Shown here: positions 1,415 to 33,367 of the stretch, piece after piece
Position numbering within the stretch: position 1 is the stretch's first letter
How the letters are laid out: the number at the start of each line of letters is the position of its first letter
Origin: Lenisia limosa
Lineage: Eukaryota > Protista > Breviatea
Reading direction: 5' to 3'
Assembly (NCBI GenBank): GCA_001655205.1
Contig: LPNZ01010086.1
Coordinates: forward strand, 1 to 33,367
Length of the DNA: 33,367 nucleotides
Notes under the pieces: model-generated
Database searches by the model: none
Told to the model about the DNA's origin: nothing
Seen by the model: the letters and a program-made list of their open reading frames with translations, nothing else
Program-made: the position numbers and the translations under genes

Positions 1415-4400
1415 ATGGGTGACCCTGCACTCAAGAAGACGATCATCGTTGTGGTCTGTGTCTTCGTCTTCTTCTACCTCTTAACATGGGGAACATCAAG
1501 TGTCAGTAATAACAAGTATTTGGGTTGATTTGCTGAGGGGTTGAACAAAGAACTTCGATGGTGGTTGGTTGCATTATTGATCATTTCAAGTGCGGCTGAG
1601 TTGGGGTCGCAGGAGGAGGAGTCTGAGAACCAAGAACAGCTTACTGAATTCGAAGAAGGTTGGACGGCTTCAACATTGATTTTCTAACAAGGGATGTGAT
1701 AAAGGGCCGATAACCTGACTTGTCTCTATCAGACAGGATTCCTTGTTTACGGTCTAGGAGAGGAAGAAGAAAGTCAACATGCTACCCAAGCAGTTGCAGC
1801 GATAATCATCTTGTCCGTGTGTGTGTTAGCAGCACACTTGATCCACACATATGAGCTCACTTTCATGCCTGAAAGCGTGGTATGGGAGGGAGGGGTATGG
1901 GAGGGGAATGATGGTACTGTTATGTTTTCTATTGTCATTTGAAACTTGTGTTTATCTCTATCAAGTCTTCACTCGCTTGGACTGTAATTATGATCTCCAG
2001 ACTTTTCTTTTGTCCACCTTTTCTGACATGTTGACCTCCCTTCAGGCGGTAGTCTTCATTGGCATGCTATTTGGACTTGTTCTCCGCATAAGCCACCAAG
2101 ATTATGAGAACCTTGTGACTTTGGACCCCCAATTGTTCTTTTTGTTCATTCTCCCACCCATCATCTTTGAGTCGGCCTACCTTGGAGTCAACAAAGGAGA
2201 CTTTTTCCGACACATTGTCCCGATCGTGGTATTTGCGCTAATCGGAACCGTCATTTCCGCAGTTATCATCAGGTGGGTCTTGCCGTTTTGACTCCTCCCT
2301 TTCCCTCCCCAGTGTAATTTGTTCTGACTAGGTGTTTTACACGGCTTATACTGAATCCCGTTCAACAATTGATATTTTCGGTCTTTAGCCGACTTGTGAT
2401 TCGTTCAGTTCGTTCCTCTACGTCGCCGGAGAAATGGGAATAGCTTACAAGATGCCTTTCTTGGACTGCTTCATTTACGGCTGTATGGGGGTGGAATAGG
2501 ATAACTGCTGTGTTTCCAATTAAATATTTGGGTTCATATTTCAAATAGGAAAGAACATGACATTTCAGCACTGACATCGGCGGTGGACCCGGTTGCTACT
2601 TTGGCTATCTTCAAAAACCTGTGGGGATGGGGCATTGGAATAACATTTCTTGATTCAAATGAAAGTAAAATAATCGGAGGAGGGGAAGATGAAAGTGGCT
2701 TCTTCGGTTTATGCGTTTAATTTCTAACCCCCTGAAAGTTTTTAAGATGCCATCTTATCACGCAGCTGCGTGGTGCCCATGTTGGAAATGACCGTCCTGG
2801 GTGAGTCGATAGTCAACGATGCAGTTTCGATTGTTCTCATGCGGTGAGGGGCCTTGCAATGAGGAGTATGTTGTGTTTTTTTGCTTACCCCTCCCCCCCT
2901 CTCCAGAACACTTGTCCATTTCTTGTCGCACCCTGTTGAGAGCGGCCTTCTCCAAGAGGCAGCCGGCAGGTTCCTTCTGAGCGTCTTCGGCTCGGGTGGG
3001 TCCAGGGGTTGAAAATCGGAGCACTTCATGGTGCCAATAATAAAGGTTGCTTCCTTTAACCTCTACATACATGTATTGTCTCTATAATGCCTCATTAGTT
3101 TTATGCCTTTTCACAGCGCGTCACCTTGAAATAACCTTATTTGTTTGTACCGAAGCGTCTTACTCTGACCTTTTCAGCTGCTCTTGGCGTTGGACTTGGC
3201 CTCATTTCTGCCCTGGTATGTTCTTGTTGGAGCAATTGTACTGGACTTCTTTCTTTTGCTATTCTGTCGTGTTCCTCACCTCTCCACTCCAATAGGCTCT
3301 CAAGTACCTCTCCCTCCGAGACAACCCCACTTTTGAGTCGTCATTCCTCTACTTCTTTGCGTACCTTCCTTATGTGGCTGCCGATATGTTAGGAATGTAA
3401 GCATGCAGACATCTTTAAGGGTTATTAGAAAATCTGAGATATTGTGGAACAAGCATTCATTTTTTTGACCTTCCAGGTCCGGCATTATGGCTGTTCTCTT
3501 TGCTGGTATTACGATGGCGCATTACACTCACCACAACATGACCCCGTTGAACCAAGTAAGGGAATTCAGGTTGTTTATGGCTTTAGAAAGCTAGCTTATT
3601 GACTTTTATATCGGTTGTTTATGGCTTTAGATTGGCGTTGGGCAAACATTACATACTTTGGCGTTCCTCTGCGAAACTGCTGTCTTTGCCTATTTAGGTA
3701 AAGGGATGGAAACGATTCGTCATTATAGCATGTATATATAATATAATATATGATATATACATATACTACATATATTATTGCTACATAATATATATATTGC
3801 TACATATTTTGGTGAATAGGCTTCCACAACCCAACGTATCACTTTATTGTATCAAAGAAGCCGGGCTGGGTTAAACTTGAAAAAAACACTTTGCATTATT
3901 GTCGCAATTGTTTTGCCTGAATGCTAATTCTACAGGAATTGCCATTTTCACGCATGAGCATCACTTTGACTTTGGATTCATTTTGGTGACTATTGTGGCG
4001 TGTCTGGTTGGACGCGTCTTCAATATATATCCTCTGTCGTTCATCGTAAGGGTGCTTGTTTGAGTGTTTCGGCGCATGTCTTGCTTTTACCCGACATTTT
4101 AGATGAATTTGTTCCGCTCAGAAAAGATTCCTGCCAAAATGCAGGTCTGCCTCTTTTTCACTATTCTTTCTCCTTTATCTTCACCCCTCATTACCCCCAG
4201 TTCATGATGTGGTTCTCAGGACTCCGCGGCGCAATTGCCTTCGCGCTGGCGCTCAACGCACCCGGACACCGATCACTGATCGTCACCACCACTCTGGTGC
4301 TTGTCGTGTTCACCATGGTCGTTCTTGGAGGCTCAGTCTTACCAGTGAGCCATGAGGCTCAAATGGATTGCTATGAATTTGCTGACAGTTTAGCTCCTCA

Positions 4401-5348: not shown

Positions 5349-8300
5349 TCAGGCATCTAAAGGGTGAGTGGATGTTGGATGTTGGGGAACTGGTGATGCA
5401 TTACATAATGAAGCAGATGATGATGGAGATGATCCAATAATAATATCGAAGGACATAACAAGGATCACCTTAAAGAAGGTCTCGGTGCTGGGTGGAGTTG
5501 ATAGGCAGGTGTCTTCGAAACCAGCAATGGAACTCTTTGCACTAAAATTTGAGACATAAACGGGCTTACACATAGCCGAGGGCAAAGTTACCACCGCATT
5601 CGCCAGTGACGTAGAGAAGGTCATGACCATTAAAGACCCGGGTAGGACTGGACGAGTGAGAACCCTCGAACACCTACAAAGGACAAAGCGCAGTGACGGC
5701 AACAGTAGCATCGGTAAAGCCCTTCCCTAACGATTGTGACACCATTACCCCTCCGTTAGCTGGGGGGGGGGGGTAAGCGAAGAATTGNNNNNNNNNNNNN
5801 NNNNNNNNNNNNNNNNNNNNNNNNNATTAATATAGCTGCGTCAGTATTGTGACCAAAGGTCAAGACATCGTATTGGTCAATAGCAGGAACCGACACCCAC
5901 CTAATGGACAGAATGATAATACTACCGAAGTATGTTGAAAAAAAAAAAAGACCCATTGAATAGATTTCGCACAATAATTTTCGGTGTAATATTTGAATTG
6001 CAATTGCCCCTACAATTGTGCGTGATCCTCACGGTCGACGTATTTGACGGTGGACACAACTCCTCTGAAATAGAACCTTCCAGAAGCTAAGCAAATAAAT
6101 AATAACAGCTTGCAAAACACTGTATTTCTGATTGTTGTGGACAAAGGATCCCCTTAGTATTATTATGGCAAATTTCATATCGTATATTATTATATCATAA
6201 ATGTATCATGAAAACTGAATTTCACTTGATACACATGTACTATATACAGTATAATACATATGATATCATATGTTACATAAAATTATATCATCATATATGA
6301 TATGTATTATATTACTATATGATCATATAGTATTATATATATCATATCATATATTATAATATCTCATAGCTATATAGTAGTATATTAATATAATATACTA
6401 CTATATATCTCTCACCAGTTCTGATCAAAGCGTTATAAGCAGAGTTGGATCCAAATTCAGGCTGTGTGTCTCCCTCGGGCATGGAAATCATCCTATGGGG
6501 GTCACATCATAAATATCCCTGTGATTTTTGGAGATGAAGATNNNNNNNNNNNNNNNNNNNNNNNNNNNNNNNNNNNNNNNNNNNNNNNNNNNNNNNNNNN
6601 NNNNNNNNNNNNNAGCCATTGTCTCCCGAGTAGTAGGCCATGCCAGAAGAAAGCGTCACGAATGAGGAGTGGCCGGTGGCGTAAACGCTCACAGGGTACC
6701 CGTGTGATGTTGGAATGGGCTGGATCGTGAGAAATAGGAAAGAAAAAGGCAGGTATAATATGATATACTAATACTATGTATAGTATCACATACATATGAT
6801 ATATACTTAGGGCTTCACTTCGGTTCGAAAATAGACTGCATTTCTCGATAAATTCGATATTTTCTCGGTCTTTTTTGAACCGAAGTGAAGCCTAAGAAAT
6901 TCCTAGACCCTCAACCAACAATTTTGTAAAGGGCAACGTATGAATAATCAGTGGACCCGTAGTAGATGGAGTCTTTTACCTCCAGGCCAAATCCATAAAC
7001 CTCCATGTTGGCTAAAAAGGCGTAACTATGCTAAACTGTGCTTGTGTGGGAAAATGTGTACCAAGTTCAAACCCATTGGCATTGATGCAAAAAGTATTGT
7101 GCTATTAACCAAAAAGATTAGTAATACCAACCTGTCAGGATGAGCAAGTGGTAGAAGCCGTATGATATCTTGCTAATTTGTGAAGGTAGATCGTTAGCGG
7201 TCCATTCAGGCATTGCTGGTGCATTAAAATGGAGGAATAGAGAAATGGCCGTCCGTGAAACACCAGGCAAAACAGAGTCTTTCATCCTAGTTGCCCACAA
7301 ATAACAGTAGGCTCGGTTCCAACAGAGTTGAGAGCAACGCCGTTGAAGGGCTTTTGCCGACCAGCAGCAATGAAATGAGTACCTGGGGTATGAAGCAAAC
7401 CAACAAGGCACTTGGTATCTAACTATGAAAGAAGGGGAGTCGAGTACTCAGTCACATACTGTTAATTACAAAACTTGCTTGATGGAAAACAAACGCATAG
7501 TCCCACGTTTCGGCAATATGCGAGAACTCCAGGACAGAGTCCAAGTACTACATGGTCAATTGTGGTTGACTGTTCTGAGGCGTTTCAAGTGCGTCAACAG
7601 GCTAAGACATACACACCAGTACCCACAGAAACACCATCGTTGAGGAAAGCATTTGTTGAGCTTGCACCACACCCCACAAGACCTGGCATGATAAGTAATT
7701 GTCCCGAAGACTATTTCATACCCCCCCCCCCCACCTTGTGTGCTTTCCTGACATGTTGGCAAATCAGCCCATCCCGTCAGCACGGAGCATTGTACCGGTC
7801 CCGTGACGGAAAGCTTGAACTTTGCCGGGCATGAGGCAACACAGGTCCGGCCCGATGCTGTCAGTTCGTAACAGTGTAACGACAGTCTGGGAGGAGGGGG
7901 GGGGGGGATAAAGCGAGAAATTTTGGAAGAATATTAGGGTGAAGGTAAGTCACTTGGGCTTCACTTCGGTTCGAAAAAAGACTGAATTTTTTCGATAAAT
8001 CTCCGAAAATTATCGATATTTTATCGGTATTTTTCGAACCGAAGTGAAGCCCTCATAGCCATGAAATAAATAATCTAAAACTCCAACAAACAAACAAGAA
8101 ACCTAATATAAAACACAAAAACAAAGCCCGGGCCAGCCTTTGAAGAGTCCCACCAAAAAAGGTAAAGGGAAATGATTTTTTTTTAAAAAAAAATCCGATT
8201 AACAAAGGGGAACAGTCTCTGCAAACCTTGGTGGTAGAATTGGCAACTCTCTGCAGTTGCTTCCTGAAAAATTACTCCACAAAGAACAAACGATAACAAT

Positions 8301-30895: not shown

Positions 30896-31393
30896 TTAAT
30901 AGAAGTATCCGAGGATCTTGCCACCAGTGTGCTTGCGACGAGCCTCCTCGTGGTCCATGATACCGTAAGAGGTTGTGAGAACGATGTAACCGAACTGACG
31001 AGAGGGGAGGAGGTTGGTCTGCCATTGCTCAAGGTCATGGAGCTGAAGAAAGTTAACTTCTGAAACAAAACAACAAATAAGGTAAATCCCGTAAAAACAC
31101 TTACCTGGACATCAAAGCGGGGAGAGATAACACCACACTTGTTGAGGCGGCCAAGAAGGTTGACAACGATCTTGCCGGAGCGGTGGTCGTCGACGACCTC
31201 AAAGTCACCAATGTAGCCTATGATGATAAGTACCCTTTGTTAATGTATTCCAATCCCTACCGTGCTTTTGCATGACCTGGAGGAACTTGACGATGACCTT
31301 AGAAGAAGGACGAACGATGACTTGACGCTTTCCAATGCGCTCAGCGTTGATAATGCCGTTAAGGGCGTCGTTAAGAACAGACATGCGAGTCAT
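30896..31393 (-). CDS. RPS15A: 40S ribosomal protein S15a (uS8)
   Basis: [45 protein letters not shown]|[37 protein letters not shown]|[48 protein letters not shown]. Introns at 31260-31218 and 31104-about 31045. Confidence 0.99.
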
Positions 31394-31612: not shown

Positions 31613-32526
31613 ATGCTCTGGTTCCTTACATTAACACAGAACTGTAATCTTAAATGCTCCTATTGTGGAAGTGACGAGACTTTTGAAGGTGACATTGAGG
31701 ATATTTCGCCTCATCCTCGCGATTTAACATTTGCCACGGAGCTATATCAAAAACTTAACACCGATGAAGATCCTATTATATGCTTTTATGGAGGAGAGCC
31801 TCTTCTCAAGGTTTGCGGAGACCGCCTCCAAGCCTTTCTTATTAATTTTTAGATCAGAATCATTGAAAAGGTTGTTTCTATGGTTCCCCACGCCAAAGTA
31901 AGCCATCCCTTCTTTAAATTTACAGATTAGTTTGTGATCCAGACCAATGGAACACTGCTCCCCAACGTTTCCGATGATCTTCTTACTAAGATTGACACCA
32001 TTTTAATTTCCCTTGATGGTGACGAAGAAGCCACGGACCGGTGGGAAGAGGGATACAACTGGCAGTCAATGCATATTTCGGGTGTCTTCTTACATCACAG
32101 TTCTCGTGGAGAAGGTACCTACGATCAGGTCATCGATGCCACCCGTGATGCTCGTGAAAGGGGCTTCACTGTAAGTGGCTTCCAAGATAAATTTAGTCTG
32201 GCTTTTTGGCTTATCTATTTCTCACAAATTTTCTTTTCCGATGTGGTCTTACTCTAAAACGTCTTTCACATGTTCTATCCTTTTATTTGTATTTACTATT
32301 TATTGGACTAGTTTGTGCTACCTGAATTGAAACTACGTCAACACTATAGGGAGACTTTGTTGCCCGTATGACAGTCAGCAACGGTTCCAACATTTACGAT
32401 GATGTCATGCATCTCATCGACTTGGACCGTACAGAAACCGAGCCCCCCCTCTTTGACCATGTGCACTGGCAAATGGATGTCTTGTGGGACAGCCCCAAGT
32501 TCGCTCGTTGGGATAACTTCCTTAAG
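31613..32526 (+). CDS. Radical SAM enzyme resembling the AF0577 (TIGR04084) family, intron-containing, 3' partial
   Basis: [19 protein letters not shown] contains the CxxxCxxC motif at 31643-31666. Further motifs: [52 protein letters not shown] and FDHVHWQMD. At least four GT-AG introns. No confident exon after 32526. Family assignment is from recalled motif similarity, not a search. Confidence 0.9.
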
Positions 32527-33367
32527 GTAGGCCAGGTCAATAAATATTTGCATATATTGGATATTTATGAATATTCATATTCATAAATATGATACATATC
32601 GTAATAAAGCAATTATTCTTAATGTAAGTTATCATACTGGCTAAAGTCTTTGTTAAATTTTAGTAAAAACTAGGTAAAAGATTACGTAACCAAAACGGTT
32701 TGTTCGGATATATACATGATAATGTTTTGGGTTGGCACCCTGCTTTAACAAAATTATATCATGATTTATTTTTAAGGAGAGATTGATTATTATTTATAAA
32801 ATTGATGTTTTTTTTCTCTCTAATTGTAAATGTTGGATTTCCTTTGGTAAAGTTAACAGAAGAACGAAGGGAGTACCAAAAGATGTACATTATAAATGCT
32901 GATAGGTGGAACCGTTAAACTCATCATTCTGGCGTTTTTACTACACTGTCCCAAAATTGAGTCAGATAAACTGAAAACTATACGAACAAATCCAAGAAAG
33001 GTAATAGAAACAAAAAATCAAATGATGTTTAAATTCCATAAATTAAGTCCTGTAGCCATTTGCTGTATGATTTTAATATGCATTCAGTAATTTTTTCCTG
33101 TCAGTTTACAACGTATTTTGTCATAATTGGTGTTTTTTTTTAGACGTTTCCTATTGTATTCATAATATGTTATCTATTACTATATCGATATATGTGTGCT
33201 TAGCACTTCTGATTTATTCCAAATCATATATTTTATCATATTTATACATATATTTATCATGTGTCAAATAGAAATCATTTTTGAAATAAAATCTCTATTG
33301 ACCGACTCAGCAATTTACTTTCAAATTGTTGTTTGTGCCTCTTTTTTACCAAAGTGTCTCACTTTTT

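Follow-up and report, generated by a model that had tools for sequence, protein, structure and literature searches.

Contig LPNZ01010086.1 of the breviate Lenisia limosa, analysed in its entirety (33,367 nt; hereafter the window), carries near its end, on the forward strand, the first five exons of a gene for a radical S-adenosylmethionine (SAM)/SPASM enzyme of the family TIGR04084 (rSAM_AF0577), and the remaining exons lie on a second contig, C3183, of the same 49-Mb assembly. Taken together, the two parts very probably make up an intact nuclear gene of 14 exons encoding a protein of about 374 residues, which belongs to a single eukaryotic clade of archaeal derivation. Judged by its sequence, this apparently intact gene is a further representative of an established, though functionally uncharacterised, family. 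With Lenisia limosa, a second breviate joins the carriers of this Fe–S radical enzyme, which is found in low-oxygen eukaryotes of at least four supergroups, among them the human and veterinary parasites Entamoeba, Trichomonas, Histomonas and Blastocystis as well as rumen fungi. We know of no report of the family in animals. Its stand-alone nature, typically single-copy occurrence and wide spread point to an overlooked housekeeping modification and, if the substrate were found, the enzyme could become a parasite-specific drug target.

A probable gene of 14 exons on two contigs

Within the window the gene occupies positions 31613–32526 (+), where five exons separated by four GT–AG introns of 42, 33, 60 and 179 nt encode the 200 N-terminal residues of the enzyme. 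Exon 1 (31613–31810; 66 codons) opens with an ATG at 31613 and encodes the cluster motif CNLKCSYC, of the form CxxxCxxC (Cys11, Cys15 and Cys18), followed by a signature characteristic of the eukaryotic clade (..DETF..DIED.SPHP..) and by FYGGEP. The 42-nt intron 1 (31811–31852), a gap with an in-frame stop in tblastn alignments, leads to exon 2 (31853–31897; 15 codons), which aligns with the helix C-terminal to YGGEP in homologous proteins. Beyond intron 2 (31898–31930), exon 3 (31931–32040; 110 nt, ending in phase 2) supplies the QTNG and ISLDG motifs and, after intron 3 (32041–32100), exon 4 (32101–32170; 70 nt) supplies RGEGTY. Intron 4 (32171–32349) is followed by exon 5 (32350–32526; 59 codons), which contains the most family-specific stretch of the protein (ARMT, YDDVMHL and FDHVHWQMD) and is 79% identical to protein P0051 of Pygsuia. 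When full-length Pygsuia, Euglena and archaeal homologues were aligned to the DNA by tblastn, exons 1–5 translated cleanly and were colinear with the homologues from their Met1 on, and each intron appeared as an exact alignment gap with in-frame stops. A preliminary description of the window had proposed a CxxxCxxC gene with at least four short introns at 31613–32526, together with a string of motifs including YGGEP, QTNG, RG.G.Y and ARMT. All of these motifs are present in exons 1–5, and the intron count holds, with four on this contig and thirteen in the full model. As far as this contig is concerned the coordinates are exact; position 32526, however, marks the end of the last exon here and not the end of the gene. 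A fifth intron opens with GT at 32527, and the 841 nt from there to the end of the contig (32527–33367, +) are AT-rich and without coding signal; the intron resumes on C3183.

A search of the whole 49-Mb assembly with the TIGR04084 model returned matches on these two contigs only, and the matches are complementary: the window covers model positions 3–176 and C3183 covers positions of about 190–347. At the C3183 locus (L012, whose own coordinates are used below), exon 6 ends at 956 and its 5′ start lies inside a run of Ns at 817–914. It is followed by an exon at 994–1048, by exons for the SPASM part at 1256–1323, 1411–1488, 2467–2528, 2655–2706 and 2764–2823, by an exon at 2911–2984 and by a terminal micro-exon of 7 nt at 3054–3060, read as C CCC TAA. 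The introns on C3183 are all of the GT–AG type and coincide with gaps in tblastn alignments to the Pygsuia, Euglena and archaeal proteins. The preliminary description had looked to downstream exons for a C-terminal SPASM-like motif, and they are there, open and bearing Cx2Cx5Cx3C. The seven-Cys SPASM motif is in fact complete, with C-x12-G-x4-C spread across two exons, Cx2Cx5Cx3C interrupted after ..CGGR by an intron, and the final Cys; all seven cysteines match invariant Cys columns in the alignments of homologues.

The extreme 3′ end of the gene is informative. Splicing of the last intron (69 nt, 2985–3053, GTGAG..TTTTAG) changes the predicted C-terminus from ..EIM* to ..EIIP*, the ending of all 56 aligned homologues, in which E371 and P374 are invariant. 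Restoration of ..EIIP by the micro-exon is therefore strong indirect evidence for selection on the gene and for splicing as modelled. The complete model has 14 exons and 13 introns, its roughly 374 codons equal the Pygsuia protein in length, and all 14 exons are open, without frameshifts and with 45–79% identity to the Pygsuia protein per aligned stretch. Every readable one of the 34 columns that are invariant in the 56-homologue alignment is kept. No Lenisia limosa protein corresponding to this gene was found in the databases searched, as is to be expected given that the contig break cuts the gene; it escaped annotation owing to its division between two contigs and its last exon of 7 nt, which standard gene callers would overlook.

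Several observations weigh against an intact gene and have to be set beside this evidence. The invariant W201 and Y206 and about seven further residues (W-R-x-x-x-Y-N-P-G in relatives) fall under the N run at 817–914 of L012, and a near-invariant Phe of a ..PF.. motif is replaced by Ile. The link between the two contigs is suggested by colinearity and single-copy status rather than by sequence overlap, and splicing and expression are predicted from conservation. Since the gene is cut by a contig end in repeat-rich DNA, about nine codons are unreadable and the spliced model comes from DNA comparison, one could suppose that the part in the window is a dead fragment and that the exons on C3183 belong to an unrelated copy. 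This would leave unexplained why the only two places in 49 Mb that match TIGR04084 complement one another so closely (3–176 and about 190–347), and why 14 open exons keep the readable invariant residues, show no frameshifts and end in a 7-nt exon that restores an invariant Pro; we thus consider a pseudogene or an assembly artefact very improbable. The chance that an assembly from a mixed culture has taken in an archaeal contig, making the gene a prokaryotic contaminant, is negligible, in view of thirteen GT–AG introns, a best relative in another breviate and the eukaryote-clade signature in exon 1. Moreover, the contig is eukaryotic, since an intron-containing gene for the ribosomal protein uS8 (RPS15A) adjoins; the introns together with this neighbour bear out the earlier proposal of a nuclear gene rather than contamination.

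The uS8 gene lies at 30896–31393 (−), its first exon piece scoring 21.2 bits (cut-off 24) and its last 34.2 bits against PF00410 (Ribosomal_S8). The uS8 and radical SAM genes stand head-to-head, with about 220 nt between their start codons. Intron 5 has features of its own. A repeat copy of about 120 bp at approximately 32629–32750 has some 33 other matches in the assembly, 72–84% identical and on both strands, and could be a repeat resembling a miniature inverted-repeat transposable element or a short interspersed nuclear element; many copies sit near contig ends, which is probably why the assembly breaks at the end of the window. Just past the exon 5 donor, at 32561–32590, lies an AT-rich stretch of 30 nt that is 93% identical to its own reverse complement. 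On the C3183 side of the same intron, a tRNA gene that shares the strand of the radical SAM gene is represented by its 5′ two-thirds (positions 759–816 of L012; Rfam RF00005, 28.9 bits) before it runs into the N run. Judged by eye it is a tRNA-Ser with a UGA-type anticodon loop; ARAGORN called no tRNA on L012, where the gene runs into the N run.

Family membership, distribution and origin

For the family assignment, the exons were scanned singly against the NCBIfam and Pfam profile hidden Markov models; the TIGR04084 model has a length of 347 and a curated cut-off of 225 bits for whole proteins. TIGR04084 was the top NCBIfam family for exon 1 (37.7 bits, positions 3–56), for exon 3 (28.2 bits, positions 72–107) and for the last large exon on C3183 (14.5 bits), with a further 19.1 bits over positions 282–328, and it was the sole family matched by exon 5 (44.2 bits, positions 131–176). 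In Pfam, exon 1 matched PF04055 (Radical_SAM) at 24.8 bits and also PF13353 (Fer4_12). The orthologues of Pygsuia, Entamoeba, Trichomonas and Euglena score 312–356 bits over positions 3–347 of TIGR04084, the Pygsuia protein reaching 326. The common eukaryotic radical SAM families, such as MoaA/MOCS1 and viperin, did not exceed 23 bits on exon 1 and had no match to the other exons. The family named in the preliminary description is thereby upheld, and the best profile is not that of Elp3, Dph, MOCS1, viperin, TYW1, lipoyl synthase or biotin synthase. A literature search on TIGR04084/AF0577 returned nothing relevant, the textual matches to AF0577 being GenBank or catalogue numbers.

To trace the distribution of the family, exon 5 alone was searched against 1.84 billion cluster representatives and the full-length matches were then used in word searches, this starting point being chosen because a 59-aa piece cannot reach full-length relatives by word search. 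Among about 150 homologues the best is P0051 of Pygsuia biforma (EukProt), with 427 summed tblastn bits vs. 316 for the next. Carriers among the Archamoebae are Entamoeba marina, E. histolytica (P0052), E. invadens and Pelomyxa, as well as Mastigamoeba, which is named from a EukProt gene identifier only. Further carriers are Trichomonas, Tritrichomonas, Histomonas, Anaeramoeba ignava, A. flamelloides and Pygsuia; the fungi Neocallimastix, Anaeromyces, Piromyces and Pecoramyces; and Blastocystis, Euglena gracilis, Ergobibamus and an ascomycete metagenome-assembled genome (Cirrosporium). The anaerobic protists previously expected to carry the gene were Entamoeba, Trichomonas and Giardia: Entamoeba and trichomonads do, while Giardia is not among the matches shown. 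A link to low oxygen had likewise been proposed, and most of the eukaryotic carriers do live at low oxygen; the family is nonetheless not restricted to anaerobes, since Euglena, the ascomycete genome and Sulfolobus carry it.

In archaea, a genome scan matched at least 536 species genomes. The family was present in 83 of 151 sampled Asgard genomes and in 50 of the 75 genomes of the crenarchaeal class that contains a Thermofilaceae genome, most carrier genomes giving one match, so that the gene is typically single-copy. Carriers named in the matches include Sulfolobus, Saccharolobus, Acidianus, Thermoproteus, Pyrobaculum, Vulcanisaeta, Archaeoglobus, Methanoperedens, DHVE2 and Bathyarchaeia. Among the control genomes, Sulfolobus acidocaldarius was positive and H. 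volcanii, M. jannaschii and M. acetivorans were negative.

Trees were computed from this single protein (about 363 aligned columns) with FastTree for 146 rows and with IQ-TREE under LG+C20 (posterior mean site frequency) for 82 rows. Both recover one clade that holds all named eukaryotes except Ergobibamus, along with metagenomic sequences, with Shimodaira–Hasegawa-like support of 86 (FastTree) and 83 (IQ-TREE). It comprises Archamoebae, parabasalids, Anaeramoeba, breviates, Neocallimastigomycota, Blastocystis and Euglena; the fungi are monophyletic within it, as are the Entamoeba sequences, and the backbone is without resolution. The clade is further marked by a signature immediately C-terminal to the cluster cysteines, which reads G-S-x-E-x-F-x-D-I-E-D-L-S-P-H-P or a variant of it. 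A strict regular expression for this signature matched 22 of the 31 clade rows; most of the others have D/E-I-E-N/E variants, one has nothing recognisable and one was unscored. Outside the clade the expression matched seven times, always at other positions. The form of the signature in Lenisia exon 1 is almost identical to that of Pygsuia.

The closest archaeal neighbours of the clade are Hodarchaeales in the FastTree analysis and a Heimdall pair plus Hodarchaeales in the IQ-TREE analysis. In the approximately unbiased (AU) test, a tree constrained to unite the eukaryotes with Hodarchaeales, a group picked after viewing the tree, had a likelihood 4.9 units above that of the free search (p-AU 0.60), and union with a clade of Thermoplasmatota, Archaeoglobi and Thermoproteota was not rejected either (p-AU 0.29). 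Because both placements survive, no donor lineage can be claimed. In our reading, these trees suggest that the main eukaryotic clade arose once, from an archaeal gene, and that the Ergobibamus copy has a separate origin. How the clade came by the gene is a different matter. The preliminary description had called it laterally acquired, of which the archaeal derivation stands; the lateral route does not follow, as the tree cannot separate transfer from vertical descent from an Asgard-like source. Transfer followed by spread among anaerobes has, in our estimate, nearly an even chance of being correct, and vertical inheritance from an Asgard-like ancestor, coupled with many losses, is a tentative but real possibility. 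The affinity to Heimdall and Hodarchaeales makes the gene a candidate for a host-derived (Asgard) gene kept only where oxygen is scarce, something that a single-gene tree cannot establish.

Fold, predicted reaction and candidate substrates

The structural context was taken from the AlphaFold model of the Pygsuia orthologue P0051, which has a predicted local distance difference test score of 92 and is disordered only in the eukaryote-specific insert. Its best matches in the PDB are to the anaerobic sulfatase-maturating enzyme (anSME; 4K36–4K39), with template-modelling (TM) scores of 0.67–0.71 over the full length, then to ChlB, CteB and SuiB; small-molecule enzymes, including BlsE and DesII, follow at TM 0.48–0.54 with a high root-mean-square deviation. 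A profile search of the PDB placed CteB (1.9e-27) ahead of anSME (6e-21). With only ten residues ahead of the cluster motif, the protein has neither an RRE domain nor an organelle presequence; lacking an N-terminal extension, the enzyme is probably cytosolic. The N-terminal extensions of some homologues of 420–435 aa are of low complexity and are not domains.

The presence of the cluster-binding residues and the fold support a stand-alone radical SAM enzyme with three clusters. In such an enzyme, reductive cleavage of SAM at the [4Fe-4S] cluster bound by CxxxCxxC would yield a 5′-deoxyadenosyl radical, this radical would strip the substrate of a hydrogen atom, and the two auxiliary SPASM clusters would carry off an electron, the predicted outcome being a net two-electron oxidation or a cross-link. 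Among solved structures anSME offers the nearest precedent; it oxidises a side chain of a protein that is folded or partly folded. At 16–18% identity, the likeness to it does not fix the reaction, and TIGR04084 as a whole is functionally uncharacterised.

Gene neighbourhoods in archaea offer no obvious partner. When 549 neighbouring open reading frames from 80 archaeal loci were clustered, no conserved neighbour gene emerged, the largest cluster covering six loci of one lineage, and six archaeal contigs viewed by hand showed lineage-local synteny only. A B3/4-domain neighbour in Atabeyarchaeum and neighbours with VTT and DUF6036 domains were considered and set aside, for they do not generalise beyond their lineages. 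With neither an RRE domain nor a conserved archaeal neighbour gene, the substrate is most likely encoded elsewhere in the genome. We see an even chance that it is a conserved cellular protein; a small molecule or cofactor is a doubtful but serious candidate. As a separate observation, on two Heimdall/Hodarchaeales contigs (L017 and L018) the family gene (6001–7089) lies between eS26, upstream on the same strand, and an 811-aa EF-2-like GTPase on the opposite strand. An LSM protein and a Roadblock/LC7 protein are encoded near the family gene there, in an arrangement absent from the other archaea examined.

Four specific activities have to be weighed against a stand-alone modification of a conserved protein. 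A role in sulfatase maturation, in which anSME turns a Cys or Ser into formylglycine, deserves attention: among known structures anSME matches the orthologue model best, it ranks second by profile, and it is alike in size and in having no RRE. We nevertheless hold it to be highly improbable: the eukaryotic orthologues score 54–60 bits on TIGR03942 (cut-off 349), and a search of the 49-Mb assembly gave no match to the sulfatase profile PF00884, a null that may reflect the first-look filter of the search. Two complete archaeal carrier genomes gave only partial, C-terminal PF00884 matches, and in Entamoeba every sulfatase belongs to the Zn-dependent alkylsulfatase type, which is not formylglycine-dependent (PMC6801973). 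Only slightly less remote, though still improbable, is a maturase of ribosomally synthesized and post-translationally modified peptides (RiPPs) that would cross-link a small precursor peptide in the style of CteB, PapB or SuiB. PapB and other peptide maturases are the next-best NCBIfam models, CteB is the top PDB profile match, and relatives carry the Joint Genome Institute label 'putative peptide-modifying radical SAM enzyme'; yet the protein has no N-terminal RRE or other leader-binding domain, no conserved open reading frame adjoins the gene in the 80 archaeal loci, and single-copy prevalence at the level seen in Asgard archaea (83/151) and in the Thermofilaceae-containing class (50/75) is unlike that of sporadic RiPP clusters. 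An enzyme acting on a cofactor, lipid or sugar, such as an oxygen-independent dehydrogenase or decarboxylase like BtrN, BlsE or AhbD, is unlikely but carries appreciable weight. SPASM/twitch enzymes of similar size include small-molecule enzymes, BlsE and DesII are among the fold matches, and there is no partner gene; in addition, several invariant aromatic residues and histidines lie on one barrel strand (..DHVHWQLD..), and the invariant C-terminal tail could close an active site. What speaks against it is that the top full-length folds are those of protein and peptide modifiers, the small-molecule folds reaching only TM 0.48–0.54, and that no pathway genes cluster with the family gene in the archaeal loci.

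The fourth activity, for which an enzyme has long been sought, is completion of hypusine on the translation factor a/eIF5A where deoxyhypusine hydroxylase (DOHH) is absent, that is, in archaea and in anaerobic eukaryotes without DOHH. No archaeal DOHH orthologue is known, yet hypusine has been reported in Sulfolobus acidocaldarius, Thermoproteus tenax, Acidianus ambivalens and Pyrodictium occultum, whereas Haloferax has deoxyhypusine only and hypusine is scarce or absent in methanogens (PMC5178350, PMC6105217). As to the family, S. acidocaldarius is the sole positive control genome, H. volcanii, M. jannaschii and M. acetivorans are without the family, and T. tenax, Acidianus, Sulfolobus and Saccharolobus are named carriers. 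E. histolytica has no DOHH (PMC7909649) and does have the gene (P0052). The Lenisia assembly itself contains a multi-exon deoxyhypusine synthase gene (PF01916; contig C9130, 3786–5872, −), and a profile search of the whole assembly found no HEAT_2 or HEAT_PBS repeats of the DOHH type. This evidence is thin and comes from a handful of taxa. Keeping in mind that hydroxylation would be unusual chemistry for a radical SAM/SPASM enzyme, that the family is patchy within crenarchaea and Asgard archaea and occurs also in aerobes that should have DOHH, and that the gene never adjoins genes for aIF5A or deoxyhypusine synthase in the 80 archaeal loci, we regard a hypusine function as a long shot.

Comparison with known systems

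The Lenisia gene can be set beside three known systems. With its own family, it shares CxxxCxxC, the seven-Cys SPASM motif, YGGEP, QTNG, SxDG, ARM, HWQ, CGGRC and the C-terminal E-I-I-P; it differs in having 13 spliceosomal introns, in being spread over two contigs, in carrying the acidic insert of the eukaryotic clade and in one Phe-to-Ile replacement. CteB and PapB (PDB 5WGG; NF047865) resemble it in combining a radical SAM core with a full SPASM domain, PapB being the second-best NCBIfam model; the N-terminal RRE and an adjacent precursor gene are lacking, and the scores of 65–110 bits lie far below the cut-off of 340. The nearest counterpart in architecture is anSME (PDB 4K36–4K39), which is alike in full-length fold, in its three [4Fe-4S] sites, in its length of about 370 aa and in the lack of an RRE, and which acts on proteins without a leader tag. 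The two are set apart by an identity of 16–18%, by TIGR03942 scores of 54–60 bits vs. the 349 required and by the fact that no sulfatase substrates were found in the Lenisia assembly.

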